A stretch of DNA of 64,000 bases from Macrostomum lignano. Lineage: Eukaryota. The notes under the pieces were generated by a model that was not told the DNA's origin, made no database searches, and saw only the letters and a program-made list of their open reading frames with translations. This document shows positions 10,651 through 61,316 of this stretch, one piece after another; position 1 is the first letter of the stretch, and every line of letters starts with the position of its first letter. The position numbers were made by a program, and so were the translations under genes. The stretch spans positions 1 through 64,000 of the forward strand of contig NIVC01002556.1 in NCBI GenBank assembly GCA_002269645.1, in the 5' to 3' direction.

Positions 10651-13600
10651 ATGCAGAGGCTCAGCAGCGACAACCAGCGGGCAGTTGGCATGTTCGGTGA
10701 GTAGAAACCCCATGGCCCAGAGCCATTGCTATCCCAAATCGAACCAGAATAGAAACTATCTCGAGGCCTTGTTCCAAGTCAATCCCCAGAAAGCGCCGCA
10801 GCCCCTGCAGCGAATATGTTTTTGTATGGATCGAGCTCTGTGCGTCGGCATAGATCTTCATCATTGCCTCCCTTGCATGCGAGCGATGGCGGTGGAGCTG
10901 CGCAATTTGCGGCATCGAGGATTTTTACGTATTGGCCGTGGGTTTCTGCGCTCTCTGCACTCGATGCGGCTTTATAGCCCGGCTGGGTTCAACCCTGGCG
11001 AAGGAAAGGCAAGCGCGGAGGACAGCCAAAACTATCGCTCAAATCTTAGGCCAGACATTTTCCTTTTCGAATTACCAAACGGCTCTCAATCACGTCTTTA
11101 TCTTCAGTTGAAGAGCAGCAGCCACTGAATCAGCCACCGGTGGCTCAAGCTCTGTCCTGGATGCTGCCGTGGGGTGACTGCAGCCAGCCTCAGCAGCAGC
11201 ACCACCACCAGACACAACTGGCGAGCCGAACGGACGCGCTTCCTTCCGACGGCTGCTACAGCGGCAGCGGTGGCGCCAAGAGCACCGGAGAAGGTGGCAG
11301 TGGTACCGGGACTGGCACTCTTCCAGTTGGATTCTATACTGAGTGAGTCTGTTGTAGAACAGCGTGTAGCTCTGACAGGGCAGCAGCCAGTTGGATTCTA
11401 TACTGAGTGAGTCTGTTGTAGAACAGCGTGTAGCTCTGACAGGGCAGCAGCCAGTCGGATTCTATACTGAGTGAGTCTCTGTTGTAGAACAGCGTGTAGC
11501 TTTGACAGGGCAGCAGCCAGTTGGATTCTATACTGAGTGAGTCTGTTGTAGAACAGCGTGTAGCTCTGACAGGGCAGCAGCCAGTTGGATTCTATACTGA
11601 GTGAGTCTGTTGTAGAACAGCGTGTAGCTCTGACAGGGCAGCAGCCAGTCGGATTCTATACTGAGTGAGTCTCTGTTGTAGAACAGCGTGTAGCTTTGAC
11701 AGGGCAGCAGCCAGTTGGATTCTATTCTGAGTGAGTCTGTTGTAGAACAGCGTGTAGCTCTGACAGGGCAGCAGCCAGTTGGATTCTATTCTGAGTGAGT
11801 CTGTTGTAGAACAGCGTGTAGCTCTGACAGGGCAGCAGCCAGTCGGATTCTATTCTGAGTGAGTCTGTTGTAGAACAGCATGTAGCTCTGACAGGGCAGC
11901 AGCCAGTTGGATTCTATTCTGAGTGAGTCTGTTGTAGAACAGCGTGTAGCTCTGACAGGGCAGCAGCCAGTTGGATTCTATTCTGAGTGAGTCTGTTGTA
12001 GAACAGCGTGTAGCTCTGACAGGGCAGCAGCCAGTTGGATTCTATTCTGAGTGAGTCTGTTGTAGAACAGCGTGTAGCTCTGACAGGGCAGCAGCCAGTT
12101 GGATTCTATTCTGAGTGAGTCTCTAATGAAACTAGCAAAATCTGGAGTTACGGTGGGGCAGCGGCAGCACTTGCTGGGCACTATACCTAGAGTCTATCCA
12201 AGGTTTTTCATGCGTCATAAGGACTCAGCTTTGAATATCAGCCGCAATTAAGCAGAGCAGGGAAAAATAGAGCTTCACAGTAAAATCTGAGCAAAGCGGA
12301 GAATGCTACAAATCCACCCGACTATTTTCCCAACTCCTTTTAAAACCGACGCCAGCTCAGCACTCCCAGACCGTGACTCAGACACTGAATTTTTACTGAA
12401 AATTCAAAAAGTGCCTACTTGCCCACGGAGTCAGTCGTCCTTGATGAGGCGTAGTTGGGCGGACGCACCGCCACCAGCAGGCGCGCGCAGCCTACTTGGA
12501 GGACAAGCCGGCCCCCGAGCCGCCTGCAGTACCGATTTGACCCAGTTTTTGACACCCTGGCAACCCGAGTCCCACCGGGGCTTTCTACTTTCCCAAGACA
12601 TTCCCAGGAAAGGAAAGAAATAAAGTCGACACAGGCCGCCTTCGGAACTCTTTTTATCTGCTTTGGATTAAAATTTTGCTGGAGCACCGCATTCCTCTTC
12701 AACGTCAAACTGCCGCATTCAACGAAGCCTTTAAAACTCCCTTGCATGGAGTTTCCGCACCGAAGTAACTATCGAAATAATCAACACTAGGTTAAGATTG
12801 CCAAACTCCGCGATTGAGAAAGATTTTAAAGTATACGAGCTATAGGCCTAAGTATGCGGGTTCTGTCTGTGATCTCATGGCTCCGATATATTTTCAGAAA
12901 CGTCACTTCATGTCACCAAGGACACTGCGAGCATATTCACAAAAAGATTTTCGGCTACTTTGTTTGTTGCTTCCTAAACTTGAAGATCTGAACACCAAAC
13001 TGAAGATCTGAAAATATAGGATGTCTCCATTGTACAGGATTTTCTTGCATCTACATCTAGTGAGAAACTAAACTACGAGCTACTCGGTAGGGGACAAAAA
13101 TCTGAACAATCTGGCCAAAAAAGTAACCTTCTACATGCAATCGATTCGGAGATACAGACAGTTCAATGATCGGCCTTCAACTATTTTTGCACGAGTTGCA
13201 AGTTTTGCGTCCTTCTAGTCTAGTAGTCCTTGAGACGAAGTCGAACCCCGTAATAATAATATTATTGATTGTAACTGTCATAATAGGCGGATGTGTAACC
13301 TCAGCCGCGGCTATTTCGCAACGCATCTGAAGTCTTCAGTCCAAGAACTTGGATTGTCGCCACACACACACACCCTCAGTTACAGCTGGGTGAACTGAAG
13401 CAATGCAGAGTTAAGTGTCTTGCTCAAGGACACACATTGTCTCGAGTGGGTCGAGAATCAAACCCCCGGCCTTTCTAACACTAGTCCGACGCTCTAACAC
13501 TAGGCTAAAACTCCCCTCGAAGTCGAGCCCCGTAACTGCATTGCCAAAGCCCCAGTTATAAAATTAAACAAAAAGTCTCATCAGCTGTTTTTCTCAAAAC

Positions 13601-16140
13601 GGCTTGAAATTCTTTTGCAGAAAATGAACTGTGGGCACCGCATTTGGGCCGAAAGCCAGCTAGCTGCAGCAGGCGGGTGGTCCTGCGCGGATCTTCAATA
13701 CCCGTGCATTTCAGATGCAAATAGCGAAGGAGGCAGCTCGAGCCCCACCGCATGGCGCGACTGAAAAGTGGGGGAAAGCACGGCTGTAAAGACTTACACA
13801 ACTGGCATGGCTGACTCAAATATTAATTGATTAATTATGGGTTCCATTGTGAATCGGAATTCGAGGTCGAGCCCTCACTGGATAATGGTTTAGACTGCTG
13901 TTGCAGACCGTCTTAAGTTGATTTTTGTAACAATGTAGCATTGCTGTCTGGCCTGATAGAATTGCGGCCATATCGAATGCAACCAATGCGGATTCAGAGC
14001 CGCCAAAGGATTTAAATAGAGTACAGATCAGCTCAGCTCAGATCAGATCAGCTCTAATCATCCTCAACACACTGCATAATATTGGATTTCGTCCTTGAAA
14101 ATTGTAAAGACCGGCGCACATTACCGCCAGTAGCTACGTGGGAATAAGATTGTTCAAATTAATATGCAGTTCATTCTCAAAATCCTCCAACTCAAACGCA
14201 AAGCCTATTTACCAATTCCTGCGCCGCAGCCAGGAGATCCGCAGCATCTGGGACGGGCAGTTCGAGCGGCTGCGCCACCAGCTTTGCGTGGTTCTTCAAT
14301 CGTCGGCCGACTACGCTTCAGAGGGCGGGGTCTGGCTGGAATCGAACGCCGGTCTGAGTCGGCTCGACGATGAGACGGAGGGCCGCATTCGCCTGCTAAC
14401 GGGCGGCCTGCCTCCGCCGGGTGAGTACGGCAGCATGTGGGGCTCAGCGGCGCCGCTCACGCAGCAGCTGGTGCTGCCGCAGCTGCTGCCAGGGACCGCG
14501 CTGCTGATGCCGCAGTCGGTGCTGCTGCAGATGTCTGTGCTGGGCTATTCGTTCTATGACGGCGCCAAGGTCCGCTTCCGCTGCTCTGTGAGTCTCCTGC
14601 TCTGAAGCGGAGGAAACGAAATTAATAGTTGGATTTTATTTTAATAGCCCACCTATAATGTGTTACTGGGTCCCAACTCTTCGTCAGCAGCACAAGCAGT
14701 TGATCTACGAAGTCACCCGTGGACATCGAATTCTTTTGAACTATCTGTGCGAAAGTTATTAATGCATTCTAAGATATTTTCTTTACGTTATTTTCTCGCT
14801 ACTTCTTAGTGGGCGGTCTCTTGTAGACTGCATGTGCGGATCGTAAGGTATGCAAGGACCACTATGAAGTTACCGCGGTACTATACTTTCCTTGTGATGA
14901 GACAAAACTCTTGAGTAGTCTTTGCAGAAAAATTATGATTAAAATCAGTCAGCTTTGTCCAATTTGACATTACTTCAAACAATGCAGGCATTGCATATAA
15001 CACCCATCCCCCTCAGCAATGCCCGAAGGAGTGGACATCCATGAAAGGCCGCATCGTCTTTCACCTGTTCCGGGTGGAAAGTCCAGTGCCGCTGGTTGAT
15101 CCGCAGAACAGTGAGGTGCTGCTGCATACCGGCTACAATCTCTGCTTTAAGCTGTTCAAGCAGCAATGCCACGAGACCCGGGGCCACAGACAGGGCGACC
15201 TCACCGTGTTCGAGGAGCCGCAGTGGTACCCGGAAGAGATCGAGAAGGTGAGAGAGTCAGTAACTCGTTTTCAGCTGACAGGTTGCGTTTTTTTGTTTAG
15301 AGTATGTCTGCAACGTCAACAACAATACTGATAGTTGCAGGTGAATATTACCGCCCAAAAACCACCGCTAAAGTAACTCTGTCCACTGCGCTGACTCATG
15401 AGCAAGTATACAGACACCGCTTGTACGCATAGGGTTGTAGCCTAGTGTTAGAGCGTCAGGCTCAGGGGTTCGATTCTCGGCCCACTCGGAACAATTTGAG
15501 TACTTGAGCAAGACACAACTCTGTATTGCTTCAGTTCACCCAGCTGTAAAATGGGTGCCAGCAATTATCTGGGGTAATTGAGGGTGTGTGTGCCGACCCC
15601 AAGTCCTTGGACTGAACAGCCGTACGCAGCCTTCAGATGCGCCGCGCAATAGCTGCGGCTGAGCTGTCGGTTACCACATTTGGTCTAATTGGGGCAGGTG
15701 TAATCAAATAATATTTTTACGCAGGCTTAATACTTTTATCATAGCTTTTATCAGGTTATGTAAATCCCGCTATGCAACATCACAGTATGCAATTATCAGG
15801 CTATGTAATCCGGCTATGCTATTATCAGGCTATGTAATCCGGCTATGCTATTATCAGGCTATGTAAATCCGGCTATGCAATTATCAGGCTATGTAAATCC
15901 AGTTTCCATCCGCAATTCAATCCCATTTGATGATTGATTGGCAGACGATAAGCCGACCCTTCCTTCCACTCGCAGGTGCTGTACAATGTGTTCTGGCGTA
16001 TCGGACAGACCCTCTACCGAGTGAGCATCGGCAGCAAGCATGTGCAGATGTGGCGCAGGGCCGGCAACCCCAGCCAGCAGCATGACAAGACTGGCTGCCA
16101 GGCCTGCCAGCTCGGCTTCTGTCAGGGAAAGTCGAAGTGA
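10651..16140 (+). CDS. 3CxxC-type zinc-binding domain protein (RTP-like), 5 exons: 10651-10696, 11108-11342, 14230-14587, 15017-15247, 15976-16140; 344 aa
   Basis: All four introns are GT-AG with matching phases (1,2,0,0). The spliced product contains RFRCSQCPKEWTS...FKLFKQQC...EPQW...VLYNVFWRI...HDKTGCQACQLGFC, the zf-3CxxC pattern of RTP proteins. Confidence 0.8.
11323..12122 (+). repeat. 64/66-bp tandem repeat (about 12.5 copies) that duplicates the exon-2 donor junction
   Basis: Unit CCAGTTGGATTCTATACTGA|GTGAGTCTGTTGTAGAACAGCGTGTAGCTCTGACAGGGCAGCAG; the first 20 nt are the end of exon 2. Confidence 0.95.
13254..13517 (-). mobile_element. tRNA-derived SINE with a CORE-like central domain
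   Basis: On the minus strand: A box (TAGCCTAGTG), B-box-like GGTTTGATTC and GTGTCCTTGAGCAAGACACTTAACTCTG...CAGTTCACCCAGCTGTA, with an AT-rich tail. Flanked by an 18-bp TSD CGAAGTCGA(A/G)CCCCGTAA (13236-13253 and 13518-13535). Confidence 0.8.
15431..15713 (+). mobile_element. Second copy of the same SINE family
   Basis: TAGCCTAGTGTTAGAGCG, GGTTCGATTC and TTGAGCAAGACAC...TTGCTTCAGTTCACCCAGCTGTAAAATGGG; colinear with the reverse complement of 13254-13517. Confidence 0.8.
15748..15900 (+). repeat. 29-30-bp intronic tandem repeat, about 5 copies
   Basis: TTATCAGGCTATGTAATCCGGCTATGC(T/A)A units. Confidence 0.85.
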
Positions 16141-19491: not shown

Positions 19492-20122
19492 GGTTTTGGT
19501 TTGTTTGACTCCGAAACCACATAAGACACAATCGAAAATTGTCCATAAGACACAGCCTTGGCGTACTGACAAACTCAACTGGCCATTATTTCAGCTTTAG
19601 CAGGCGTTTGAACCATAGACGATTAGTTAACTATGCATTTATTAACTGACATAAGGGAATAATCGCAAACAGTCTACATGGCATTCTGAATTACACTGAA
19701 AAAAGGATAGTCAAGACATTTTAGCTCAGTCAAGACAAACGCGCGCGAGCCATAGACAAATCGTTGTCACGTGCTGCGACCGCTGATTCTTTGCATTGTT
19801 TTGTTTGCTACCAGCGCTCGCAAAACAATCGTTGTCACGCACTGAGGCCGCTGTTTATTTACTCATTGTTTGTCTGTAGGATCGTCAAACAGAAAAACAA
19901 TGCAAAGAATTGTAGTGAGCGAGAGAAAGCCAGTCAGGTTTAGTCCAACAAACAAAATTTAAACCCTCACCCGAAGGGTGGAGCTATTCTTATATTTACT
20001 CGAGAACGCATGTACATATACAAACAGAGCGCGCATGTACATCACATCCATTGACCCCCAAACACCAACTAGCAAAACGAACCAGTGAGTAAACTCACTT
20101 TACAACATTCACCCTCCTCCTT

Positions 20123-21311
20123 AACAGTCACTAATTCCCTTCACAGCTGGCAATCAATGCGTCACGACCTGGCCGTACCACAACGGTGGTGCCCGCAGTC
20201 GCGTACTGCGCCGCAGCTCCGCGTCGGCCTCAGCGGTCGCTGGCGGCGGGTCCGTCGGGCCTTCTGGCGCTGCCGGCTCTGCAGCCACTGGCGGCTGTGG
20301 CGGCATTGCCGTTGCCGAAGTCGTGCTGGCACCCTCGGGCTCCGCATGAGGCATACAGAGGCTGGTGTGCCACCTTGAGCCGTCCTCTAACCTGACGATT
20401 GTCTGGCTGATTATGTCGCTGACCCGTAGAGGTGGTGACACGTGGCTCTGCAGCTTGCCTCGCATCCGCGGAGATCGCACTCGCACCAGGTCGCCGACCC
20501 GGAATTGGGGCGGTCGGGTTCTTTTGAGCCACTTGAACTTCTTTTGAACCGACTCTCTTAAGCTGAGCGGCACTCTGCGCAACGGTTGAGCAGTCGGTTG
20601 CACCGCGGGGTTGACTCGCGGACTGTGCTGAAATCCTTTGATGTGTCCGAGTCCCTGAGTCAACTGGTCGAACCGTCCTGGGATCCAGTCAGGCAGGGCT
20701 CTGGTGCCGACTGTCTGCACTCGCTCACCGTCTGCAGTGACGATCCACAGTCCCAGCTGATCCATGAGGTCGCACCCAGGATGTCAGATCCGGTATTGAC
20801 CACGCTAAGGTTGACGTAAGGCACTACTTTGTCCTTGAGTTGCACCGAGGTCAGGATGTCACCAAGCACGCAGATCTTGCTGCCGTTGAAAGCGACCAGC
20901 TTCCGTGATGACGCCTACAGGGGCACGTTCGACAGAAGTCTGTTGTACGTCGTCTTGGTGATGATGGAGACTCGCGAACCGGAGTCAATGAGCAGCTTGA
21001 CAGGCCTCCCGTTCAGCAGCACTTCGCAGTGCTTGCTTGCTGCCGCAGCTGTCGACACAGTGCAGATGGAGTACTCATCCTGAAGCTGTCGCACTCGGTT
21101 GCCGCTCCTGCAGACTCTGGCAAAGTGCCCGCGCTTGCCGCAGGACTTGCACTTCTGCCCCTTCGCTGGGCAAGTCTGTCCACCTAAATGCGCCGCTGAG
21201 CCACAGTAGCCGCAGCTCCGGCCGTCGGTTGTCGGCTTCAGTGCCTCGTGCTGTCTTGCCGCTGCTCCACTGTTCTTGGCCTTGCTGATCTGCTGGACTC
21301 CACAAGAGCTG
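20123..21311 (-). pseudogene. Gypsy A remainder: two zinc knuckles, protease, start of RT and post-integrase tail; RT/RH/IN core deleted
   Basis: CGYCGSAAH...C and CKSCGKRGHFARVC knuckles; LIDSGS protease; TAG at 20915-20917 and a frameshift. PLRRVPLSLRESV is fused directly to FRVGDLVRV near 20540. Confidence 0.9.
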
Positions 21312-21316
21312 CTTGG

Positions 21317-24300
21317 TGTTAGATGTATTAATTTGATATAGACTTTTATCTATGGCTTGACCGCCACTAGCATTACAGTACAACTTGAATGAGCGGTGCC
21401 TCGTTCTAAGGCCACAATCAATAAAAGTGATATTGAGAGCTGCTCAACTGGAGCACTTAAGAAATTACCGAGTTAGCTAAAGGCTACATCAAAATTGGTG
21501 TTATAGTGTCTGTGCATCTAGAACCAACACTGGCGACGAGGATGGGATGATTCCAATCGAACCCCTGGAGACAGACGTGCCTGCCGAGGTCAGCAGATGG
21601 CTACAGCGATTCGAGGCTATAGCCAAAGTCAACAAGTGGAACGACGACGTGCTGAAGTATGCGTTCATAGCACAACTGGGAAAGAAGGCGTTCAACCTTC
21701 TGGCTGACGCTTCACTGCCAGCAAAGCCAGAGGAAAAGACCTTCGATCAGCTGAAGACGCTACTAACAAACGAAACGAAAGCATCGAAGTCGGGACTGGC
21801 CTATAGATACGCTTTCCACCACATGAAGCAGGAAAGCGGAGAAGACACGTCGGCCTATGCTAGGAGACTTCGACAAGCCGCGGACGACTGTGAATTCACG
21901 GACCTAAACGACAGGTTGCGCGACCAGTTTGTGTTTGGCTTGTCGAACAAAGACATCGTGAGGAAACTGCTAAGTGAAAAACTCGCAGATCTCACCTGGG
22001 AGAGGGTGACGTCCGTGGCAAGCGCATGCGAAGCCGTAGCGCGTGGTGAAAAACAGATGAGCAGCAGCGAAATTTTATCGGTCAAGAGGGCGGATCGACC
22101 GCGTTTGCCAGAGACTCGACAGAACGATCGCAAAGCGTGGCAGCCAACCGGGTACGGCAAGTGGAATCAACAAAGCCATCGCGACCAAACAAAATGTTTC
22201 TTCTGTGGCAAGGATGGACACCGCAAGGACGTCTGCCAGCACCGTTCAAAGACCTGCCTGAATTGCGGAAAGACTGGCCATCTGAAAGCTGTGTGTAAGT
22301 CTAATACATCAAGACCTGCTCAAGGGTCAAGACAGACTGTCAAGGTGAGAGCGATCGAACCGCAGAAAGATTCTTCAGGACCTGTAGGAGCACAGGACAG
22401 CATCTTCTCCGTAAATGGCAGCTGTGAGGAGCCCAGCAGGCGCAGGATAACAAGGCTTCAGCTGGTCAATGGGGCCAATCTTCATATGATTATGGACACG
22501 GGATCCGTCTCATCATTTGTACCTCTAAAGGTGTATCAAGGCCTTCCGTTAAAATCCAATTTAAGACCGACGGCCCAACGATTTACAGCATACCAAGGAG
22601 ATCCGGTGCGTGTTTTAGGAGAAGTTACTGTCAGAGTAGAGCGTGGCGGCGCAGTAGCAAACCTGCCATTGTTTGTCGTAGACCACAGAGATGTGGAGCC
22701 CATATATGGTTTGGACTGGATTGCAGAGCTGGAGCCGGAGCTTTATGTCGCCATAACCCAAGGTGGTAATGCTGACGCCACAGAAGAAAGGCAATCAAGT
22801 CGCATGTCTCCAGTCGACACCGTGAAGGCGTCACTATCGATCAGGCCAGGCGCAAAACCTGTTTTCTGCAAGCCAAGACCGATTCCATATGGTATTCAAG
22901 AAGACGTAAAGAACGAGCTACGAAGAATGGAATCTGAAGGACAGTTGGAGAAAGTGCAATCGAGCGAATGGGCCACGCCTATAGTGTGTGTCAGAAAGCA
23001 ATCTGGAAGTATCAGGATTTGTGGCGACTATAAGATAACACTGAACCCAGTCTTGAAAGACATGGTATCGACAACGCCATCGATAGATGAAGTGATGTCC
23101 AGATTGGGTCGAGCCCGGAAATTCTCCACGCTAGATCTCACAAATGCATACTTGCAGGTACCAGTCGACGCCGAGACAAGTCAGATGCAAACTTGGAGCA
23201 CTCCCTTTGGCCTGTTTCGTCCAACCGCATTGGCTTTTGGAGTAAAACAAGCACCCGCTATCTTCCAGTCACATATGGATAAACTCCTGCTAAACCTCGA
23301 CGGCGTGATATCCTACCAGGACGATATCCTCATCTGGGGCGAAAGTCAGACTGATCACGACGAAAGGCTCAACACCGTAATGAAGATCCTGGAAAACAAT
23401 GGACTTCGCATAAATGCTGAAAAGTCTGTACTAAACAAGTCGTCAATACGATTCCTGGGCTACGAGATCAGTGCAGATGGAATTTGCCCTCTAAAGGAGA
23501 AAGTGGAAGCCATTGCCGGATTAAAAGAGCCAAGCGACCTCAAACAACTACAGGCATTCTTGGGAATGGTCGATTTCTATGGACGGTGCATTCCTAACTT
23601 GGCTACGTTAAAAGAGTCATTGACCAATCTAACCAGGTCAGGTGTGCGATGGACCTGGGGAAGGCAAGAACAGAAGGCATTTAACACAATCAAGGAAAGA
23701 TTGCTCAACGCCGGACTTCTAAAGTCATTCGATCCAGCTGAAAATGTTATACTTACGACTGATGCATCACCGGTGGGACTGGGAGCCGTGTTGGAGCAGT
23801 CGTCCGGTCCTGTTCTATTTATCTCCAAGACGTTGACACAGGCTGAGAGAAATTATGCACAGATCGAAAGAGAGGCGCTAGCCATAGTCTGGGCGGTTAA
23901 ACGCCTCCACAAATATCTGCTAGGACGCAAGTTCGTGCTCAGGACGGACCATCAACCACTGAAATTTTTGTTCAACCCGGGAAAGGCCTTGTCTACAGTT
24001 GCTGCTGCTAGGCTACAGCGATGGGCGATCACACTCATGGAGTATGATTACGTCATCGAGTATAAGCGTTCCGAGGAGATCCCTGTCGCTGATGCCCTAT
24101 CTCGATTGAATAATAGTGCCGCGGAGAGCGAACAATTCGACGTCAACTCGATTCAGGACAGTCTACTTGATATACCAGTTGACAAGCAGCGGCTTAGGCG
24201 CACGTCAATGCTTGATCAGGAGATGCGACGACTGTTTGCGCTCGTCAAGCATGGCTGGAAGCCCGAGGAATCAAGGAGCTACCAACATACGCTCGAACTC

Positions 24301-25620
24301 GTGACGAACTGGTGATCGAGAACGGTCTTCTTTACAGAGGAATACGCCTGCTGATCCCGGAGGAGGAGCGACAAAGAGTTCTTCAATTATTGCACGACGG
24401 CCACATAGGCGCGGACAAGATGAAATCCATCGCCAGACAATGCGTATGGTGGCCAGGAATAGACGCTGATGTCACTAGGCATACCAAGCAATGCGTCGCT
24501 TGCCAGACAAATAAAGACTATGGAGCATCAATCCAATGGGCATCTTGGCCAGAGGAAAGCGAAAAGTGGTGCCGTGTGCACGCAGACTACGCTGGACCGT
24601 TTAAGGGCAACAAGTACCTGCTCGTAATAGTCGATGCCTACAGCAAATGGGCAGAAGTACATGTTACGCAGTCAACTACATCGGCAGAAACTATCCGACG
24701 TTTCCGAAGAACGTTCTCGCAAGAAGGTGTTCCCGCAACATTGGTTACTGACAATGGTCCACAATTCACTTCAGTGGAGATGGAGGGCTGGCTCAAAGGA
24801 AACGGATGCAGACACGTGCTCACGCCTCCGTACCACCCACGATCAAACGGCCTTGCGGAAAGGTTTGTGAGAGACATAAAGAACCATGTGGCGGCATCAG
24901 GAGGCGAAGACGATCTACAAACCAGTGTCGACCGCTTCCTTCTACAGTACAGGAACTCCCGTCACTCCACGACAGGAAGGGCACCTGCAGAGTTAATGCG
25001 AGGACATCTGCTTCGGACGGCAACGTTGACCTTGGCCAAAGAACCGGTGTGGGTAAAGACCTACAGGAACGAAACCGAGAAATGGAAGCCCGGTGAAATC
25101 GTTGCTAGAGAAGGTAAGAAAATTGTGGGCGTACAATTGGAAGACGGAAAACACGGCCGATATCATCTGGAGCAGACAAAGCCAAGGATTCCCGTTGAAA
25201 CTAGCGAGCCTCAGGAGAGCTCACAGCAAGGTGTTGCTGACCAGAACACAAGTAACCCGATAGAAGAGCCTGGACAACCTGAAAGAGGTCATCGCTGCCA
25301 GCGCACGCGGAAGGCACCCGACAGACTGAACTACTCAACTTTAGGAAGCCCGGATTGCGCGTGAACTGGAGTGAACTCGGACAGTTGCAGAAACTATCGG
25401 GAAGGAGTGTTAGATGTATTAATTTGATATAGACTTTTATCTATGGCTTGACCGCCACTAGCATTACAGTACAACTTGAATGAGCGGTGCCTCGTTCTAA
25501 GGCCACAATCAATAAAAGTGATATTGGGAGCTGCTCAACTGGAGCACTTAAGAAATTACCGAGTTAGCTAAAGGCTACATCAAAATTGGTGTTATAGTGT
25601 CTGTGCATCTAGAACCAACA
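21317..25620 (+). mobile_element. Ty3/Gypsy LTR retrotransposon B (Mag-like), nested in the gag of element A in opposite orientation
   Basis: 213-bp LTRs (21317-21529, 25408-25620) with 1 mismatch; 5-bp TSD CTTGG; PBS TGGCGACGAGGATGGGAT (tRNA-Ser GCU); PPT GGGAAGGAG. Confidence 0.97.
21547..25364 (+). CDS. Gag-Pol polyprotein of Gypsy B (2xCCHC, PR, RT, RNase H, IN), with one single-base frameshift near 24270
   Basis: CFFCGKDGHRKDVC and CLNCGKTGHLKAVC; MDTGS; YQDD; TDAS/EREALAI; HDGH...CVAC; integrase D-D-E. The alternative frame KELPTYARTRDELVIENG restores continuity. Confidence 0.95.
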
Positions 25621-25625
25621 CTTGG

Positions 25626-31014: not shown

Positions 31015-31942
31015 TACGGTTGTGCATTTCCTGCAGGCTGAGGAATGCATCTTCGAGGCGAAATAATTTACACCACAAATGCCAAAGCTTCACGCCGCTC
31101 ATAGATTAAGTACAGGGAAAGTAAGTGTATAAATGTATATGCATGTAAATATGCACGGAAACTTTCTTTAGTTTACCATTCTGCTATTAGCGTGTTATTA
31201 GCTGTTGAGGAATGACTGTGCAGTTGAGCCTGCAAGCCTATTCTCCTCAGTTTGTTCACTAGCTTTCATGCGTATTTTGGTGCATCTTGAGTGAGGTGCT
31301 GACGAGCCCGCTTTGAGTTATTTCCCTTTGTTTGTATCTCTTATTGCAGCATTTTTATTTCTGTAGCTTTTTCTCATTTCTAAGTTTACACATGGCTTAG
31401 GAATGTAAGCGAAGTGCCTCTTATGCGAGTGATCAGTTTGCAGTAGCTGAGACGGCTCGACTGTACATACATTTAGCATTTTAAGAGCTCTTTAAGCCGT
31501 CTATAAGAGATCGCAAGCAGCAAGCAGCCGCTGCAGTTTTGCAGCTCTCTTTGGTTTTATCTGCGACTTCAAGACCAGAATTGATGGATTTTTTCTTTGG
31601 AACGAATCTAACATTATTCGAATTAACGATTCTGCTTTCAGCGGATCCTGAATGGGAAAACAGTCATTAGCGTTTCTGAGGGAAATTTTCGAAGATTCTA
31701 AGGGTGTTAAGGTGACATAAACCTAAGGATTAAAATATAATATTTAACATACGCTCCTATCAGTGAGTTGTCAAAGAAGTGACTAGAGATCACTGCAGCG
31801 CCAAGGAGTTATATGAAAAGTGAGAACAAGTCAACCTCCTCATGAGTTGATGAGGCTATTGGGGTGGTTAAAAGTTGGTGACAGAGGCCAAGAGTTGGTG
31901 GTAAAGTTGACTAAGAGTCGTTGAAGTTGGCTAAGTGGCCAA

Positions 31943-32730
31943 GAGTCGGTGAAGGAGGCAAAGAGTCGGTGAAGAAGGCAAGAGTCGGTGAAGAAGGCAA
32001 GAGTCGCTGAAGAAGGCAAGAGTCGGTGAAGAAGGTAAAAAGTCGGTGAAGAAGGCAAGAGTCGGTGAAGGAGGCAAAGAGTCGGTGAAGAAGGCAAGAG
32101 TCGGTGAAGAAGGCAAGAGTCGGTGAAGAAGGCAAGAGTCGGTGAAGAAGGTAAAAAGTCGGTGAAGAAGGCAAGAGTCGGTGAAGAAGGCAAGAGTCGG
32201 TGGAGGAGGCAGAAATCAGTGAAGAAGGCAAGAGTCGGTGAAGAAGGTAAAAAGTCGGTGAAGAAGGCAAGAGTCGGTGAAGAAGGCAAGAGTCGGTGAA
32301 GAAGGTAAAAAGTCGGTGAAGGAGGCAAAGAGTCGGTGAAGAAGGCAAGAGTCGGTGGAGGAGGCAGAAAGTCAGTGAAGAAGGCAAGAGTCGGTGAAGG
32401 AGGCCAAGAGTCGGTGAAGGTGGCCAAGAGTCGGTGAAGAAGGCAAGAGTCGGTGAAGAAGGCAAGAGTCGGTGAAGAAGGTAAAAAGTCGGTGAAGGAG
32501 GCAAAGAGTCGGTGAAGAAGGCAAGAGTCGGTGAGGGAGGCCAAGAGTCGGTGAAGGAGGCAAAGAGTCGGTGAAGAAGGCAAGAGTCGGTGAAGGAGGC
32601 AAAGAGTCGGTGAAGAAGGCAAGAGTCGGTGAAGGAGGCAAAGAGTCGGTGAAGAAGGCAAGAGTCGGTGAAGAAGGCAAGAGTCGGTGAAGAAGGCAAG
32701 AGTCGGTGGAGGAGGCAGAAAGTCAGTGAA
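31943..32730 (+). repeat. Purine-rich 19/20-bp minisatellite, roughly 40 copies
   Basis: GAGTCGGTGAAGAAGGCAA and variants. Confidence 0.95.
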
Positions 32731-37695: not shown

Positions 37696-38710
37696 GGAAT
37701 TGCTGAGATGTCAAGGCTTACTGGGGAATTACTGAGATTTCAGTGCTCACGAGGGAGTCGCTGAGATGTCGAGGCTTACGGGGGATTGCTAAAAAAGACA
37801 GGTGCACTCGGCATTTCGTGGCTGATGCCGGCGCCCCGGACACTGCAGGCAGTGCCGCCTACATCCGCGCCCAGGCTCTGAAACGCGCCCTGTGAATGTC
37901 GTTGCCTCTCTTGACTCAGCCGACCCTCTTGAACCCCTGGATCCGCCAGTAGTTGCCTTGTACTTTTATAATCTGTATTTTGTAGAGCCATTTTTAAAAT
38001 GTGAAGAAATAAAAAATGACCGGTTTGAATTGCATCCCACTGTCTATTGCAGCCACTTCTAGACCATGCAGATGCCCGGTTCCAACACACAGAAAAGTAT
38101 TGCAAAGGCACCATGCATGGCTTATGCCAGTAGCGCCAACGGTCCGTGGGTGCCTCTGCAAATGCGTGTCTCTCTCAGTAATAGATAGTCTCGCACATGA
38201 TAGCATTCTCAGTGCCCTAGAAAATATTTTCCTTTCTATCGATCGTAGAGGCAGGGGGGCAAACGGCAACTTAAACCGAGGGACTCTGTGACATCCGCCA
38301 GCTTTTCGTTTTTCGAGGAGGCTCTTCCCCCTCCTTTTCGTTCTGGCCTGGCGTGGAAGCGGCTAGCTCCCTCGTCTTGGTCTGCTGGTGGGGGACGGAT
38401 CCCCCCTGCTGCTTTTTTGCGGGGCAGGTGGCTGCTAAGTAGTTGGCTGCTGGCTAAGCGCCAACTACCCATCGACAGCCCTTAGTTGCAACTGGTACCA
38501 CACGGGTTCTCGAGGGCCGCTCTTGTGGGGAGGGCTCGGGCGTCGGCTGTCAACTCGACCTGGCGCCTGTGTCCCAAGCCCGCAGCCGGCCTCCCGCCCC
38601 CTGATCTTGCAGAGTGTGGACCGGGGGCCCGCCGGAGCCTCGCCTGGGAGCAATCCTGGGATAAGACGGCAACCCAAAGCTTCTCTGCTGTTTACCGTGG
38701 CAGAGGGTAG

Positions 38711-43540
<4,830 letters not shown>

Positions 43541-43860
43541 TCCTTGTGCTCTTTTACCTTGGGGTTGCGATAGGGGCCTCGCGGCCTATTCGCGGCGCCT
43601 GCGCCCCCCGTCAGTAGTAAGTAAGTAGATCGTAGAGGCATCTCTCGCGCAAAACAGAAAAACAAAAGCCTGAGCAGCATGTCTATGGCCAATCCTACCG
43701 ATTTCCCACGCGAAAATTCAGTCTCTCGCCTCCTAACAGTAAGTGGAAAGAGCAAAGCATAAGAACTTTCAATTACTGAAGCTTAGAGAACTCAATCATC
43801 TCATTCTCTGCTTTAGTGTGGCTTTGATCACTGGGTCTCGTTTTTCACTCGCCTTTGAAG

Positions 43861-52060: not shown

Positions 52061-52833
52061 TGCGCAACCCCCCTGGTTTACACCATGCGACTTCTTTTTG
52101 ACCAAAAATGCGACTTACCTGTGAAAGAAACCCTAAAGCAACATTGGGCAACATAGCAATTTTGGGTATACGGCAGGAGTAACTATGACTGTCCTATTAG
52201 GGCTAAATGCGTCGTCATCTAATTAGTACTACGTCTGTATTATTTGGGGTGGGCAGTTTTGCGACTCACCACTGGTCCACCACAATTTACGGTGGTCAGA
52301 TCGGCCAGGTCGGCCAGCAGTTGCACATGTATGACCCACCAGCCTCTTGCTTGCCAACTTGCTATTCAGCTTGCCCTATGGGAGACTCTGCTAGGGCTTC
52401 CAGCATTATTCTGATACTTTTCTTGCAGGCTTTGGGCCTTAGCTTTTACTTTTCAACTAGGCTAGGCTCAGCTGTTTTTCAGACATGCATGTAAATTTGT
52501 AATTAGATCTAACTCTCTTGAATTTGTTGCAGAAAGCAATTAAGTGTTCATTTTTATATGCAGAAAATAAAAAATCTTTTTGCTCAGTTACTATCTTGCA
52601 TTTCAACTAGACTTCATTTTGCTCATTGCAGCTCAATTTCTGCTGGGCTTGAGACGGATCGCTGTTGATATATTCACCTTTCACTGGTTTTCCTACTCAT
52701 TAAGGAAAGTGACAAAGCCCGGCTTACTTGGGATCACTTCTGTCCTGATCCCAAACACTCACAGCCTCTCTTCACCTGCTTCATGCAGCCAATCCGAAGC
52801 CCGCGAATTCTGTCACCATCACCGGCACCCTTA

Positions 52834-54695
52834 ATGGCCCCCAGCTTTCGTGATGAGGCCGCGCACGTTGCTGGATGGTTCGGCAATCTGAGTGGCCCAG
52901 AACAGGTAAGATTAACAGTGAATCATCCCAATTCCCAGGTGTCAGTGATTGCCAGTCCATCCCAATTACCAGGTGTCAGTGATTGCCAGTCCATCCCAAT
53001 TCCCAGGTGTCAGTGATTGCCAGTCCATCCCAATTCCAGGTGTCAGTGAATACCAGTCCATCCCAATTCCCAGGTGTCAGTGAATGCCAGTCCATCCCAA
53101 TTCCCAGGTGTCAGTGAATGCCAGTCCATCCCAATTCCCAGGTGTCAGTGCTGGCCTGCCTGCTGCGCCATCTGCGGCCGCTGTATTCGGGTCTGGCTGC
53201 GGGCATCGCAGAGGCGGCCCAGTCGGGCGGGCAGCTTCATTTCGCCGAGCTGGAGTTCCGCGCCAACAGCGCCTGCGCTATGCAGGACCTGCTGGCCTCC
53301 TCGGCGGATTCGGCGGAGTCGGCGGCCAGGGAGATGCTGTCGCTGCTGCCTCTGCTGCAGGCCGGCAGCGAGGCGGCCCAGGCTCATGCCAGCCTGATGG
53401 AGCGAATTCTGCACTGCGACCGCACGGACGAGGCCATCCGCCGCAGCCTGGCCAGCCTTGCCCTACTGCACCCGGCGTTCACCGGACCGGAGCGGGCCCG
53501 GTTCGCACAGGCCCTTCGCTCTCATCCTCCATCGCAGCCGCACCAGCAGTTCAGCCTGCTGTCGCCGGGTGGAGGCGCTGGCCAGCAGCAGCTGTGCCCT
53601 AACCGCCTGTCGCCCAACTGCAGTAGCGGGTTCGCTAGCGCCGAGCACAGCCCCCTCTCTCCGATCGGGATTCCGACTGCAACAGCTGCAGTGGCCACCG
53701 CCGATGCTTCATCCGAGGAGGCGTCGAGTGCCTGCAGCATCTCCAGCTGGCGTGCCGGTATGCGAGAGGTGCCCGCCTGGCTGAAGAGCCTGCGGCTACA
53801 CAAGTACGCTCACCTGTTCCAGGCAATGACCTACTCAGACATGCTGCGGGTCAGCGAAGACTGGCTGGAGGCCCGTCTGGTCACAAAGGGTGCCAGGAAT
53901 AAAATCCTGCTCAGCTTGCGCCGACTGCGGGATCGCCAGCTGCTGCTACAGGCCTGTGACCAGGTCCTGGCGTCTGCGGAGGCCGGGCAGGGCGCGCTGA
54001 GCGGCTGCCAGATGCGCTCCCTGCTAGCCGACCTGCGGGGCGCCATCGCAGCTCCGGTTGACCCGGAGTCCGACCTGCCCGACTTGCTGGTGGCCTGCCT
54101 GCACCGGGTCTGCTCCCAGTTGCTGCTCACCCGCTACAAGGACGACATCTACGCCGCCTTCGCCGGCCTGCTAGACACCGTGGCCGGTCACTCTGGCTTC
54201 TGCCAGCGTCAAAAGTCGCTTTGCGCCTCCTGGAAGCCGCAGTTGGCCGCCGTGCGAGGCGGGCCCGCTCCCCGCTTCGCTCGCTCCGCTGCCGCCGCTG
54301 CTGCAGCTGCTGCCAGCGCGGTGGCCGTCGTGGCATCGGCCTCTGCCGGGCCACCTCCGCCGCAGTGGTCGCAGTTCCCGCCACAGAAATCTGCTGCAGC
54401 GGCGCCCGCCGGCGCAGGTCAGGTGCAGAGCCTGCCGCTGCCGCTGCCGCACACGGGCAAGTGGTACCAGCAGCAGGAGCAGCAGCAGCAGCTCACGATG
54501 AAGCATAACTCATTCGCTGGCGTGGGTGCCGCCCCTTCGCCGCAGTCGCTGCTGCCACCAGCTGAGCAGCCGAGACGGCCGGTCGAGCGGACGCACTCGG
54601 CACCGCCAAACCAGCGCGAGATGGAGCTGGCTATCGACACCGACCTGGAGCAGCTGGCCAGGCAGGTCACCGAAGCTGCTCTTGATGCAGAGTAG
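52834..54695 (+). CDS. smg: Smaug/SAMD4 RNA-binding translational repressor; exons 52834-52905 and 53142-54695; 541 aa
   Basis: FRDEAAHVAGWFGNLSGPEQ|VSVLACLL resembles the SAMD4 N-terminus; SAM domain GMREVPAWLKSLRLHKYAHLF...VTKGARNKI. Confidence 0.93.
52921..53150 (+). repeat. 34-bp tandem repeat filling the Smaug intron and duplicating its acceptor junction
   Basis: GTGTCAGTG starts at 52939, 52973, 53007, 53040, 53074, 53108 and 53142, each preceded by CCAG. Confidence 0.95.
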
Positions 54696-54786
54696 GCGGA
54701 TGCTGCTCTGTTTAACTGTTGCTAAGGCATTGGGAGCGCTCGTTTTCGATGTTATGAAATGCATAATTCGGTCATTAATTAGTTTG

Positions 54787-55520
54787 GCTGTCACCGGTTC
54801 CCCAATCCCCAACTTCTGCTGTCACCGATTCCCCAATCTCCAACTTCTGCTGCCACCGGTTCCCCAATCCCCAACTTCTGCTGTCACCGGTTCCCCAATC
54901 CCCAACTTCTGCTGTCACCGGTTCCCCAATCCCCAACTTCTGCTGTCACCGGTTCCCCAATCCCCAACTTCTGCTGTCACCGTATCCCCAATCCCCAACT
55001 TCTGCTGTCACCGATTTCCCAATCCCCAACTTCTGCTGTCACCGGTTCCCCAATCCCCAACTTCTGCTGTCACCGGTTCCCCATCCTCAACTTCTGCTGT
55101 CACCGATTTCCCAATCCCCAACTTTTGCTGTCACCGGTTCCCCAATCCCCAACTTCTGCTGTCACCGGTTCCCCAATCCCCAACTTCTGCTGTCACTGAT
55201 TCCCCAATCTCCAACTTCTGCTGTCACCGGTCCACCCCCCAATCCCCAACTTCTGCTGTCACCGGTTCCCCAATCCCCAACTTCTGCTGTCACCGGTTCC
55301 CCAATCCCCAACTTCTGCTGTCACCGGTTCCCCAATCCCCAACTTCTGCTGTCACCGGTTCCCCAATCCCCAACTTCTGCTGTCACCGGTTCCCCAATCC
55401 CCAACTTCTGCTGTCACCGTATCCCCAATCCCCAACTTCTGCTGTCACCGGTCCACCCCCCCCCAATCCCCAACTTCTGCTGTCACCGGTTCCCCAATCC
55501 CCAACTTCTGCTGTCACCGT
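54787..55520 (+). repeat. 31-bp minisatellite (about 23 copies) 92 bp after the Smaug stop codon
   Basis: GCTGTCACCGGTTCCCCAATCCCCAACTTCT. Confidence 0.95.
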
Positions 55521-56924: not shown

Positions 56925-57873
56925 CCAGAATGTACGCGACCGGCAAGCACAGCCACACTTTAAACCCCCCCCCCACCTCTGTCTAGCTGAGGTGGGGTGG
57001 GTGCACTACCAGACTAGCCGGCTCGCTAATCCGAGGTTGGCGAAGTTTATCATGCTACCTTTTCGCACCTCCCTAGGCCCCTCAGCCTAGGCATCTATTG
57101 AACTCAAAAGCCTTCCGCCTCATTGTCATTGGTGAGCTCGACGCCCAGCGCGGAACGCCCTGGTCAGCTCTGTGCGGTCCTGGCAGCCAACCCACCTTGG
57201 CCGACAGCAGCACGGCAGCCCAGCAGCCACGGCAGTAACCCGCAGCACAAATCGGCTCAGTCAGCCCGCCCCCCGTAGCTCCTGGGGTTTCGCCTTTTGG
57301 CCCCCGCGTTGGACCAACCACCGCCACGCTGCAGCTCATTCTACGAGCTACATGTAGGTTAGAACCGCTGTTGCTAGCCTAACGTCCCCAGCCTCTGTGC
57401 AGGAGAATCGACCCGGCTCACGGTGGCAACTGACTGTCGACTGCCGCGCCCCGGCTGCATGTGTTCTGCGCCCTGCTGCCTTCGGCGCCCGCCTCGCGCC
57501 CCTGCCGCCTTGTTGCCCCTGCTGCTTTCGGCGCCCGCCTCGATCCCCTGCCGCCTTCGGCGCCCGGCTGACTTCGTCGCCCGCTCCTCAGCACTCTCGC
57601 TGCCTCGACTATCACCCGACGTTCGGGCCTAGCTCGGTGCTGGGAGGAGCTGTGTGGCGGCCAGAATGTACGCGACCGGCAAGCACCAGTGCAGCCACAC
57701 TTGAAACCCCTCAACCTCTGTCTAGCTCTGTCTAGAATACCAGACTAGCCGGCCGGCCACCCTTTTGCACCTCCATCTCAATCTCGCGCTGTTTGTAAAT
57801 ATAATTATACGCGCACAGCAGCACAAAATGTTTGCTGCCATTTCATCTATTGAACTTAAAGGCCTTCCGCCTC
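56925..57873 (+). repeat. Diverged direct repeats of about 200 bp (56925-57121, 57661-57873) flanking a GC-rich core
   Basis: Shared blocks CCAGAATGTACGCGACCGGCAAGCAC, CTCTGTCTAGCT, ACCAGACTAGCCGGC and CATCTATTGAACT...GCCTTCCGCCTCA. Confidence 0.65.
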
Positions 57874-58324
57874 AGGTCCTTGGTTAGCATGAACTTCACA
57901 GCAAAAAAATGATTAATTTTACCGGTTATTAACGAATGAGCCATTATTGATTCTTTCTTATAAAAACGTGGGGTCGATCAAGTGATGCATTTATTGTAAA
58001 TTTATTAAAGCAAAATTGATTACACCAATCTGGAGTATCACAGCGCATTGAAAATCTAAAACTCGGAAAGAAGCGAATTCACATAAAAACTTATATTACA
58101 ATCAATACTTTTGTGAAAGACGAGAAATTTGATTTACAACGAAGGCAAAAATTAGTTTTGCGTTGTGAATTAAAATTGATGCTGAATATCAGATAGCGCG
58201 CAGATAAACATTTGGTTCATAGGAAACCGCCCAAGTAATCAAAATGGTACACAATTTCCCCGAGTCGGCTAACCGTTGGCTAGCAGGTGCCAGAATGCAG
58301 AACTGAACTCGCACGAGTCACGGC

Positions 58325-61316
58325 TCAGTCAGTCACCGTGAGCAGCCATTTGTGACTCCTGTTTGAGAAATTGTTGTTGCGAGTGCAGATGAACTTGAAC
58401 TGCCCGGCCCGGTCCAGTCGGATGAGGAGGCCCGGAAAGCTGGCCGGCGCGGCGTTCAGCTCCGGGTCCAGCGGCGTCTTCGCCTCTTCGCTGTCAGCGC
58501 CACAGGCAGCCTTAGCAAAACAGCGATAGTAGCCAGCCGAGGCCAGCGCCAGGCCGAAGTCCCGCGGCGCCAGCCCGTCCAGCTGGCCGTGCCACGCCCA
58601 CACAGCGCGGCCGGCACCGTCGTTGAGGAAGCCGGACGCCTCCCAGGGCAGCGGCAGGTTGTCGTTTGCGTGGCCGGCCTCTGCCAGGTTGCTGCGGTCC
58701 GTCCCGCCGGCCCCGGCGCCGTCATCGCCGGCTTGGCCGTCACCGGCTGGGGCGCCGTTGTTGTGCGAGTTCGAGCCCGACCACTGCAGGAACAGGTGAT
58801 CGCCGACCCGGGCCGACAGCCGCGTTGGCGTAAAGTCGTACTCCACTGCCGGGTACACCTGCACTATGTTGCCTGTGGATGAGATGGATTGGTGCACCTG
58901 CACTGTTGCCTGTGGATGAGATGGATTGGTGCACCTGCACTGTTGCCTGTAGATGAGATGAACTGGTGGACCTGCACTGTTGCCTGTAGATAGGGATGAA
59001 CTGGTGCACCTGCACTCACCTCGCTTGCCGCGAACCCCGACATGGTGCAGATTGCTGGCCACAGGCACCGGCACCCGATGCAGCTGGAAGACGTGGCTGC
59101 GGTCCTGAAACACCCGACCAACTTGGTTGCTGTTGACCGCCAGCTGCAGGCCGGGCTGCACAAGTGGATTCTGACGGATTAGCTGCTCCGAGTCCGAGGA
59201 GGTCAGATTGTAGCGCAGCCGCAGGACGCAGCGCTGAGCGTCGCCGGATGGAAAGTTGGGCAGCTGCCAGTCGTAGGCCACGGGGCCGCCGCCCAGCTTG
59301 TCTCCCAGGTGGTTGTCGCGGGTTGTCGGAGCCAGGCGGCAGTCCAGGGGCGGCGGCGGCACCAGACAGGCCGGCTGCAGGCTCGAAAGGCGGTGCCGAT
59401 GCGGCACGGCCCAGCGGTAGCCGCGGGCTGAGCAGGCGGCCTCGTTGTCTATGGCCGAAGCTACCTGGTGGGGGCGAGTTCTGAGCACGTAGAGATACGT
59501 GACGTACAAATGGGTGGGCCCCGAATAATAATATGGACAAGACTGGGCAAGTTTTAAGTCAGCAGCATTCAAGACCATCGAGATGTTTAGCGACTGCATT
59601 CAGCTCGGGAAAAGTCTGACTATTAAGAGTTCTTGAGTGATTCGCTTGGCAGTTAGTGTTGCAGTCAATAAAGAAATCGATTGTGTCTATAAAAAAACCC
59701 ACCAGCTCACCTCCAGGTAGGGGTAGAAGGCCACAAAGCGGCCGCCGTTTTTGGCGCAGTCGAACTCGTTGTTCTCCGGCACCGCCCAGAGCCGCCGGCC
59801 GCTGTCCGCAGCGAAGGTCCGCACGCAGGCATGGGTTGGCGCGGCCGAGGCGGCCACGAGCGCAGGACACTCGGCCAGATTGTCAGTGAGGACGGCCACG
59901 TCCAGCCAGGGCGTCGGGTGCCAGTAGGGATAATAATCCCGCTCCTCGGGACACTCGTAGCCGCGCCTGGTACCTGCGGGGTTCTGCCTGGTGTAGACGG
60001 CGCTGCCGCCCCGAAGTCGCTGGTCCGCGGTGAACAGGCCGCGGTTCCGCTCCCGAGCGTTACAGGCGTCGTACCTGGTTCCAGCGCGCGAGTTTTGAGA
60101 TTAAAGGCTAATTAGAAGCAATTCATTGCACTTGAATTTTCTGCGCGAACAGCCTAGGCAACTCAAAGCATTTAACGCCGCATCACCCTAGACAACTCAA
60201 CGGTTATCACAAAAATCAGACAGTGAATACAGAGCCCACTTTGGTCCCTCCACAAATCTAGGTCTCTCAGGACACCAAAGACCAAAATGTCAGTTTGTGG
60301 ACACCACAGACCAAAATGTCAGTTTGTGGATACCACAGACCAAAATGTCAGTTTGTGGACACCACAGACCAAAATGTCAGTTTGTGGACACCACAGACCA
60401 AAATGTCAGTTTGTGGATACCACAGACCAAAATGTCAGTTTGTGGACACCACAGACCAAAATGTCAGTTTGTGGACACCACAGACCAAAATGTCAGTTTG
60501 TGGACACCACAGACCAAAATGTCAGTTTGTGGACAACACAGACCAAAATGTCAGTTAGTGGACAACACAGACCAAAATGTCAGTTAGTGGACAACACAGA
60601 CCAAAATGTCAGTTTGTGGACACCACAGACCAAAATGTCAGTTTGTGGACACCACAGACCAAAATGTCAGTTTGTGGACACCACAGACCAAAATGTCAGT
60701 TTGTGGATACCACAGACCAAAATGTCAGTTTGTGGACAACACAGACCAAAATGTCAGTTTGTGGACACCACAGACCAAAATGTCAGTTAGTGGACGCGGC
60801 AGGCTTATCGCTAGTTCCTCACCACTCGAAAGGCTCGTGCAGGCCTCGTTGAGCGGTGGCGGAGGCCGCCTTCCTGGCCAAAAAGCTGTCCACGGTCTCG
60901 TCGAGCGGCTTGGCAGCTGCCTGAAACCCCTGCGTTTGTGTGGAGTTGCCGTTCCGCAGCGTGTCGAGGCCGGCGCCCGCCAGCGGCTGGCACATGGCCT
61001 GCACCACCACCCGGCAGCCCTGCCGCCCGTCCCTGCATCCGTGCTGCATCGTCCACTCCACAGAGAGGCGGCTGGCGCCGCCGGACCCGTAGAAATATTT
61101 CTCGTCGAACTGCTGAGCACCGAATTCGCCAACATTGTAGCCGCCCCTGTTGTTGTTCTGCGAGTCGAATAGGCGATTAGCGTTGGTCCGCGCCGCCGAT
61201 GTCTCGTTCAGGCGGTTGTTGGAGCCACGCGGATAGTGCAGGTAAATATCCGCCTGGCAACCGGCTAGCAACAGCCCGGCAACTGTTGCTAAGGTGAGCA
61301 GAAAGCGCCCTTGCAT
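58325..61316 (-). CDS. DD3-3-like secreted protein; exons 61316-60823, 60075-59711, 59464-59020, 58872-58325; one extra base near 60060 shifts exon 2
   Basis: Signal peptide then DIYLHYPRGSNNRL, DSQNNNRGGY, EWTMQHGC, RERNRGLFTADQ, GYECPEERDYYPYWHPTPWLD, VGRVFQDRSH, GKRGNIVQVYPAVEYDF, GDGQAG, DRSN, CTRNNNFSNRSHK. Confidence 0.88.
58861..59016 (-). repeat. 37-bp tandem repeat filling DD3-3 intron 3 (58873-59019) and duplicating its acceptor junction
   Basis: Minus-strand units GCAACAGTGCAGGTGCACCAATCCATCTCATCCACAG; the exon starts GCAACATAGTGCAGGTGTACC. Confidence 0.92.
60270..60795 (+). repeat. 29-bp intronic minisatellite, about 18 copies
   Basis: GTGGACACCACAGACCAAAATGTCAGTTT. Confidence 0.95.

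Follow-up and report, generated by a model that had tools for sequence, protein, structure and literature searches.

Within a 64-kb window of the Macrostomum lignano genome (assembly Mlig_3_7, NIVC01002556.1:1-64000, the whole stretch analysed here), three introns carry tandem arrays whose repeat unit spans the intron's own splice junction: the donor in a gene encoding a 3CxxC zinc-ribbon protein, and the acceptor in the genes for Smaug and DD3-3. This arrangement was put forward in an earlier reading of the DNA sequence (the original prediction). The anatomy is real, and the deposited gene models use the junctions concerned. We regard the arrays as probably intronic minisatellites whose founding duplication chanced to straddle a splice junction, and most likely the pattern is, most simply, a by-product of the very high tandem-repeat activity of the M. 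lignano genome.

Anatomy of the junction-containing arrays

Tandem Repeats Finder (TRF) located the three arrays where the original prediction had placed them: array 1 at 11323-12122 (64 nucleotides (nt) x 12.4, 97% matches), array 2 at 52924-53150 (34 nt x 6.7, 96% matches) and array 3 at 58852-59016 (37 nt x 4.4, 92% matches). With head-to-tail units of 64, 34 and 37 nt and 92-97% matches, they have the form of minisatellites (units of ~10-100 nt, high identity), and they are also absent from mature mRNA, the deposited protein models skipping them exactly. The exon-derived stretches within the units, of 9-21 nt and repeated 4-13 times, are far beyond chance. GenBank gene models for this species come from RNA-seq-guided transcript assembly followed by calling of open reading frames (PMC5730564), and exact matches to GenBank or UniProt entries support excision in three of three genes; the copy counts first given (13 for the 3CxxC donor, 7 for the Smaug acceptor, 4 for the DD3-3 acceptor) are correct. 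Splice junctions are marked below by a slash.

The features of the 3CxxC gene are as follows.

11108-11342, plus strand: first coding exon, preceded by an acceptor-like ...tcttcag/ at 11107, with ATG at 11161; matched by P0133 and P0131
11323-12122, plus strand: array 1, 64-nt unit, 12 full copies and a partial 13th
11343-14229, plus strand: intron 1, 2887 nt, junction from P0133
11407, 11471, 11537, 11601, 11665, 11731, 11795, 11859, 11923, 11987, 12051, 12115, plus strand: decoy donors, identical to the real donor
14230-14587, 15017-15247, 15976-16140 (stop codon 16138-16140), plus strand: downstream exons, whose spliced product matches PF13695
15786-15896, plus strand: internal array in intron 3, touching no junction

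A search in which the array-bearing exon was the sole query returned two M. lignano proteins, A0A1I8FVX8 (P0133) and its paralog P0131, both of which start MLPWGDC... and extend to ...PVGFYT(D); the exon itself ends ...TATACTGA in phase 2. A0A1I8FVX8 (UniProt) agrees fully with the window and connects ...PVGFYT at 11342 with 14230 (D/QEIRSIW), and therefore the first GA/GTGAGT of the array is the donor in use and the intron runs from 11343 to 14229. Each unit begins with the 20 nt that close the exon, followed by GTGAGTCT and a further 36 nt, which gives 13 identical donors, the real one (GT at 11343) and 12 decoys, any of which would lead to a stop at codon 61. The array occupies 800 of the 2887 nt of this intron, the other 2.1 kb being non-repeat. 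Spliced together, the downstream exons rebuild the Zn_ribbon_3CxxC domain (PF13695, E=2.5e-15), with the motif FRCS/QCPKEWTS restored across intron 2. Another acceptor for intron 1, at 14169, is in frame but was rejected, none of the four N-terminal variants being present in the protein collection; the true acceptor precedes 14230. The concatenated exons gave no match in a word-indexed homology search, whose index also missed existing M. lignano DD3-3 proteins, so that a missing hit there does not show a protein to be missing. The protein collection lacks the full 311-aa protein (11161-16140) and contains a truncated model only; A0A1I8FVX8 reads past the donor at 14587 and ends in VSLLL and a stop, so public annotation appears to have this gene truncated or not at all. 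Array 1 also displays a 194-nt higher-order period of three units, recognisable by T/C and CT-insertion variants, and its last seven copies share an A-to-T change; this suggests growth by block duplication.

In the Smaug gene the repeat unit spans the acceptor.

52783-52905, plus strand: exon 1, 41 codons, ending ...GPEQ; exact match to PAA56931.1
52906-53141, plus strand: sole intron, 236 nt, a 33-nt first segment and six 33/34-nt units
52939, 52973, 53007, 53040, 53074, 53108, plus strand: first base after each decoy acceptor
53142-54695, plus strand: exon 2 through the stop codon, with the SAM domain; exact match to PAA56931.1

Joining 52783-52905 to 53142-54695 yields a 558-aa protein that is letter for letter PAA56931.1, whose gene lies on NIVC01002556.1 at exactly these coordinates in identical DNA; a further M. 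lignano protein of the same cluster is 99% identical. The first intron segment (33 nt) is GTAAGATTAACAGTGAATCATCCCAATTCCCAG, and each of the six units reads GTGTCAGTGA...CCCAG. Exon 2 starts with GTGTCAGTG, and the acceptors all read CAG/GTGTCAGTG, making seven identical acceptors, one real and six decoys; array 2 overlaps the real acceptor and its periodicity continues through the first 9 nt of exon 2. Every decoy would lead to a premature stop. M. lignano Smaug has one intron versus 11 in the fish ortholog, and the clam gene spans 55 kb.

DD3-3 is encoded on the opposite strand.

59020-59464, minus strand: exon 3, ending ...GKR(G), CGAG/GTGAGT
58873-59019, minus strand: intron 3, 147 nt, a 36-nt first unit (beginning GTGAGT) and three 37-nt units
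58852-59016, minus strand: array 3, covering the whole intron bar its first 3 nt, plus 21 nt of exon 4
58984, 58947, 58910, minus strand: first base after each decoy acceptor
58325-58872, minus strand: exon 4 to the stop codon, beginning (G)NIVQVYPAVEYDF

Each 37-nt unit ends in ACAG ahead of GCAACA, so four acceptors are present, one real and three decoys. The model lacking 59019-58873 is exactly PAA56932.1 (622 aa), and among the intron combinations enumerated only removal of this segment gives the annotated 622 aa. The 49 array-encoded residues would interrupt RGKR/GNIVQ, invariant in eight aligned homologs, and RGKRGNIVQ stands in each of the five DD3-3 models of M. lignano, which come from two annotation efforts. 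Two of the three decoys shift the frame and the third adds 37 residues in frame. In both gene copies the array intron is stop-free and divisible by three in length (147 nt here and 525 nt in the copy described below); if retained, it would add 49 or 175 residues in frame and leave the protein untruncated.

Copy number and chance overlap with junctions

A second, homeologous scaffold, NIVC01000543.1 (L001), has the same gene order and is 93-97% identical to the window. Its deposited Smaug (557 aa) and DD3-3 (625 aa) proteins use the same junctions, but around introns of very different size: 781 nt with 22 units versus 236 nt with 6 units in the window for Smaug, and 525 nt with 14 units versus 147 nt with 4 units for DD3-3. 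The arrays and their splicing are common to both copies, and the arrays are therefore older than the split of the two. Copy number has since changed more than 3-fold, and the arrays are excised whole regardless of size. As every deposited gene model uses only the outermost copy of the repeated site, the entire array is removed and copy number sets intron length, which bears out the proposal that array expansion lengthens introns. A few decoys are mutated in L001 and most are intact; such changes are what would be expected of drifting copies.

Other arrays provide a comparison, among them two inside introns of DD3-3 and the proteasome gene.

60270-60795, minus strand: 29 nt x 18, inside DD3-3 intron 1 (60075-60822), no junction
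62450-62641, minus strand: 51 nt x 3.8, in proteasome alpha-2 intron 2 (~62381-62781), no junction

The first begins 27 nt past the donor and stops 195 nt short of the acceptor. The proteasome introns were placed by tblastn with a human PSMA2 sequence; listing every possible GT-AG model of this gene gave 2696 solutions, too many to be of use. Checked against intron coordinates, these two arrays and the one at ~15786 are intronic and contact no junction, as first described. Two further arrays are likewise present in the homeolog with very different copy number: one of 31 nt x 23 (54787-55519) follows the Smaug stop codon at a distance of ~90 nt, and another, of 32 nt x 9 (63456-63747), lies 44 nt upstream of the annotated start of the proteasome gene and excludes that gene's 5' acceptor.

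Six large arrays are thus shared by the two scaffolds: the Smaug and DD3-3 junction arrays, the two internal to introns, that downstream of the Smaug stop codon and that upstream of the proteasome gene. Contact with a junction makes no difference: copy number varies 2-3.5-fold in all six. Copies in the window and in L001 are 6.7 vs 22.7 (Smaug) and 4.4 vs 14.4 (DD3-3) for the junction arrays, a variation between gene copies typical of minisatellites, and 18.1 vs 9.9, 3.8 vs 9.8, 23.3 vs 9.3 and 9.2 vs 30.2 for the others. Junction arrays hence behave like all other arrays here, which lends no support to the junction-anchored process that the original prediction had suggested.

The frequency of overlap points the same way. 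Of the nine introns that the analysis was able to define in the window, six carry an array, and a junction is spanned by three of these six arrays. Under a null in which each array was collapsed to one unit and its seed placed at random, with at least 8 nt required on each side of the junction, 1.7 junction-spanning arrays are expected against 3 observed (P(>=3)=0.17), for a tiny sample of six intronic arrays and a crude null. The unique first segments measure 33 nt in Smaug and 36 nt in DD3-3, and both introns collapse to ~40-50 nt, so a 34-37-nt duplication was likely to include a junction. The argument that three cases in 64 kb imply a junction-anchored process is not supported at this value of P and in a genome of which 15% is simple and tandem repeats (PMC5730564); these make up 9.8% of the window. 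So small a sample from one window, with so crude a null, neither shows nor excludes a genome-wide junction-anchored process.

Origin of the arrays and choice among splice sites

Probably, then, the arrays arose as ordinary minisatellites. In M. lignano short segments would be tandemly duplicated at a very high rate, with arrays persisting only in non-coding DNA. Where a duplicated segment happened to include an exon edge and its splice signal, the extra copy would come to lie inside the intron, to be multiplied by slippage or unequal exchange, and selection would be kept only on the copy abutting the real exon. Splicing from the first donor to the last acceptor, as in the deposited gene models, makes the whole array one intron.

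Several observations weigh against this reading. Smaug and DD3-3 have introns made up of complete units, at positions that are intron-free in outgroups, and purely secondary expansion does not predict whole-unit introns at novel positions. Each array has a fractional extra copy (array 1 has 13 copies of part A and 12 of part B), which a single clean duplication does not yield. The shortest intron identified here is ~75 nt long, and the ancestral intron of 33-36 nt is a reconstruction. The 3CxxC case taken alone is only ~4% likely under the null used above. Moreover, decoys may be used at a low level, or used with rapid decay of the products.

The first of these points bears on a second possibility, which we consider appreciably less probable: that the introns are no older than the arrays, a short insertion or duplication carrying splice signals having arisen at an exonic AG/G and survived because splicing could remove it, and that tandem expansion then built the intron. 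It would account for the absence of an intron at GKRG/NIVQ in Capitella or Xenia DD3-3 and at EQ/V in Mactra or Cynoglossus Smaug, and for the whole-unit introns (7 units here and 23 in L001 for Smaug; 4 and 14 for DD3-3). Only the 5' end of the first unit, where the donor lies, sets it apart from the other units; the Smaug junction is CAG/GT and every Smaug unit is GT...AG; and the first DD3-3 unit holds a 13-nt copy (GTGCAGGTGCACC) of exon sequence lying 8 nt downstream of the insertion point, which, judged by its sequence, looks like a templated insertion. A model of such a kind has been proposed for human tandem-repeat genes (PMC10809524). Set against this, the intron-only parts of the Smaug and DD3-3 units have no significant similarity to the flanking exons in local alignment (p=0.27-0.99), and an origin by exon duplication was rejected on these grounds. 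DD3-3 intron 1, with its internal array, is likewise absent in Capitella, and M. lignano has also lost introns common to the outgroups; novel intron positions are hence a feature of the lineage at large rather than of junction arrays. With its AG/GC form, the boundary of the DD3-3 units cannot be both donor and acceptor, the outgroups compared (Capitella, Xenia, Mactra, Cynoglossus) are very distant, and the intron holding the 3CxxC array is 2.9 kb long, with 2.1 kb of non-repeat sequence. A broader version, that tandem amplification of a junction-carrying module is an active way to make and grow introns in Macrostomum, starting from a ~35-nt insertion with a copy of the adjacent exon edge and with the outermost sites picked among up to 22 identical competitors, is a little more doubtful again. 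DD3-3 (58325-61334) also lacks the QWTG/SN intron common to annelid and coral, and this, together with the single intron of Smaug, indicates heavy intron loss plus new intron positions in the M. lignano lineage.

It is improbable that the decoy sites are kept for regulation, be it unproductive splicing, recursive removal or a sink for splicing factors. Nearly all of them are intact, but the high unit identity can be explained by array homogenisation without selection, and copy number differs more than 3-fold between homeologs, as in the neutral-looking arrays nearby. The Smaug units have the AG/GT form needed for stepwise splicing, but GTGTCA is a poor donor and the DD3-3 and 3CxxC boundaries regenerate no splice site. 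In DD3-3 the frame would stay open with use of one of the decoys or with retention of the intron; the deposited models include no alternative isoform. We give very little credence to the arrays or junctions being long-read assembly or gene-model errors in repetitive DNA, an idea prompted by the 99.9% identical inverted copy of 57252-64000 in which the contig ends, showing problems of assembly redundancy, and by the inherent ambiguity of spliced alignment within repeats, but opposed by an independent scaffold, 93-97% identical, that has the same arrays with other copy numbers, by the agreement of two independent annotation sets on the junctions, and by protein homology that fixes the DD3-3 and Smaug junctions independently of RNA mapping.

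Three other candidates were considered. Introners and other transposon-derived introns occur as many near-identical copies dispersed through a genome; within the 64-kb window no copy of any unit was found outside its own array, and such an origin finds no support there. RNA structure of the introns is not unusual (z=+1.35 and -0.19), which gives no support to structures that would loop out the decoys. The notion that all introns here are decayed arrays was rejected, DD3-3 intron 2 and 3CxxC intron 2 having no periodicity at a TRF score threshold of 30.

With many intact decoys present and yet only the outermost site used, some form of site selection is needed, and to this extent the original prediction stands; the mechanisms that it named fared less well. 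Under the usual rule of nonsense-mediated decay (NMD), dependent on the exon junction complex, stops in the last exon do not trigger decay. The array intron is the last in the gene in both Smaug and DD3-3, so decoy-derived stops fall in the final exon and clean-up of the decoy products by NMD is unlikely. Recursive splicing is formally possible only in Smaug, the unit of which is GT...AG, and even there the regenerated donor GTGTCA is weak, being off consensus at positions 4 and 5. The boundaries compared with the recursive-site motif AG/GTRAGT are AG/GTGTCA (weak) in Smaug, AG/GCAACA in DD3-3 and CAG/CCAGTT in 3CxxC. As at the recursive sites of long introns, the Smaug acceptor abuts GT and stepwise removal would give the correct mRNA; unlike them, the Smaug steps would be 34 nt and the DD3-3 and 3CxxC arrays lack the motif, a comparison made at the level of sequence only. 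Most likely the decoys are ignored through exon definition, in which the authentic site alone would be attached to a real exon context. The decoy 'exons' are 9-21 nt long and followed by another intron-like module, and the first decoy acceptors lie just 33 nt (Smaug) and 36 nt (DD3-3) from the donor.

Human introns derived from tandem arrays were reportedly described by Zhuo et al. in PNAS in 2007. Those arrays are reported to be minisatellite-like as well, within genes and with splice signals in each repeat, but to give many alternatively spliced small introns, whereas every deposited model here leaves the internal sites unused. Intronic minisatellites, or variable number tandem repeats (VNTRs), such as those of the human catalogue in PMC10078293, vary in copy number and can influence splicing. 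The present arrays resemble them in being intronic, in having units of 29-64 nt arranged head to tail and in differing widely in copy number between gene copies. They differ from ordinary VNTRs, which lie inside introns, in that the unit contains a functional junction, making every copy a full-strength decoy.

The expansion of dual-specific AG/GT sites modelled for human UBC and VCX3A (Duan et al. 2024, PMC10809524) likewise places the intron within a tandem array, of whole-unit length and with splice-site sequence in each unit, although whole-unit length is found in Smaug and DD3-3 and not in 3CxxC. Coding units are kept in the mRNA in those human cases, whereas the units here are non-coding bar the 9-21-nt exon edge, homolog alignments and deposited models being free of unit-encoded residues. 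There, too, one AGGT motif serves as donor and acceptor, while here only the outermost sites are used in deposited models; the donors GTAAGA and GTGAGT occur in the first unit only, the others beginning GTGTCA or GCAACA. In the Rogers model of tandem duplication of an AGGT-containing exon segment (examples in PMC3265369, PMC4974935 and PMC2891723), splice sites are similarly duplicated, the region between them is removed with restoration of the original mRNA, and intron positions are lineage-specific; for DD3-3 and Smaug the intron is indeed absent in related lineages, albeit distant outgroups only. Under that model the intron would consist of copies of the flanking exons from a single duplication, unlike the multi-copy arrays here, in which only the exon edge (9-21 nt) matches and the other 15-44 nt have no significant similarity (array 1 judged by eye). 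The mRNA junctions are CAG/GT in Smaug, GAG/GC in DD3-3 and TGA/CC in 3CxxC, so that AG/GT occurs only in Smaug.

Read as ordinary minisatellites, the arrays are a natural experiment in splice-site choice, with 12 perfect decoy donors beside the real site in one gene and up to 22 near-identical decoy acceptors (~20 with AG intact) in another, their number differing threefold between two expressed gene copies, in a species that supports transgenesis and RNA interference. They illustrate how minisatellite dynamics can triple intron length with the mRNA untouched, and the position of such junctions can be ambiguous to spliced aligners and gene predictors. Should the less likely reading hold instead, the introns would be recent, datable examples of intron birth via repeat expansion, a mechanism for which direct evidence is scarce.

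Other repeats in and around the window

The inverted copy mentioned above (L006 7341-14085 versus 57252-64000 of the window, 99.9% identical) lies at the end of the same scaffold (119-133 kb) and takes in the DD3-3 and proteasome region, its arrays unchanged; it reflects either an inverted duplication of very recent date or a fault of assembly. In a neighbouring 924-aa gene, a 30-nt array (L006 3613-3844, 7.7 copies, 97% identical) was rejected as an intron, being an in-frame coding repeat with ETQATEAEAMQ-like units; exons evidently tolerate arrays with a period divisible by three. A 19-nt array of ~41 copies (31940-32730) lies in a strongly purine-skewed region.

Intron 3 of the 3CxxC gene contains a tRNA-like stretch, GGTTCGATTCTCGGCCC (~15425-15500), in which ARAGORN calls no tRNA and which may be a fragment of a short interspersed element (SINE). 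An LTR-type retrotransposon with long open pol frames (reverse transcriptase, RNase H, integrase) occupies ~20000-25500. Relative to L001 the window has a 5.4-kb insertion at 38252-43627, the endonuclease, reverse transcriptase and RNase H domains of which identify it as a LINE-type retrotransposon, gained or lost since the split of the two copies.

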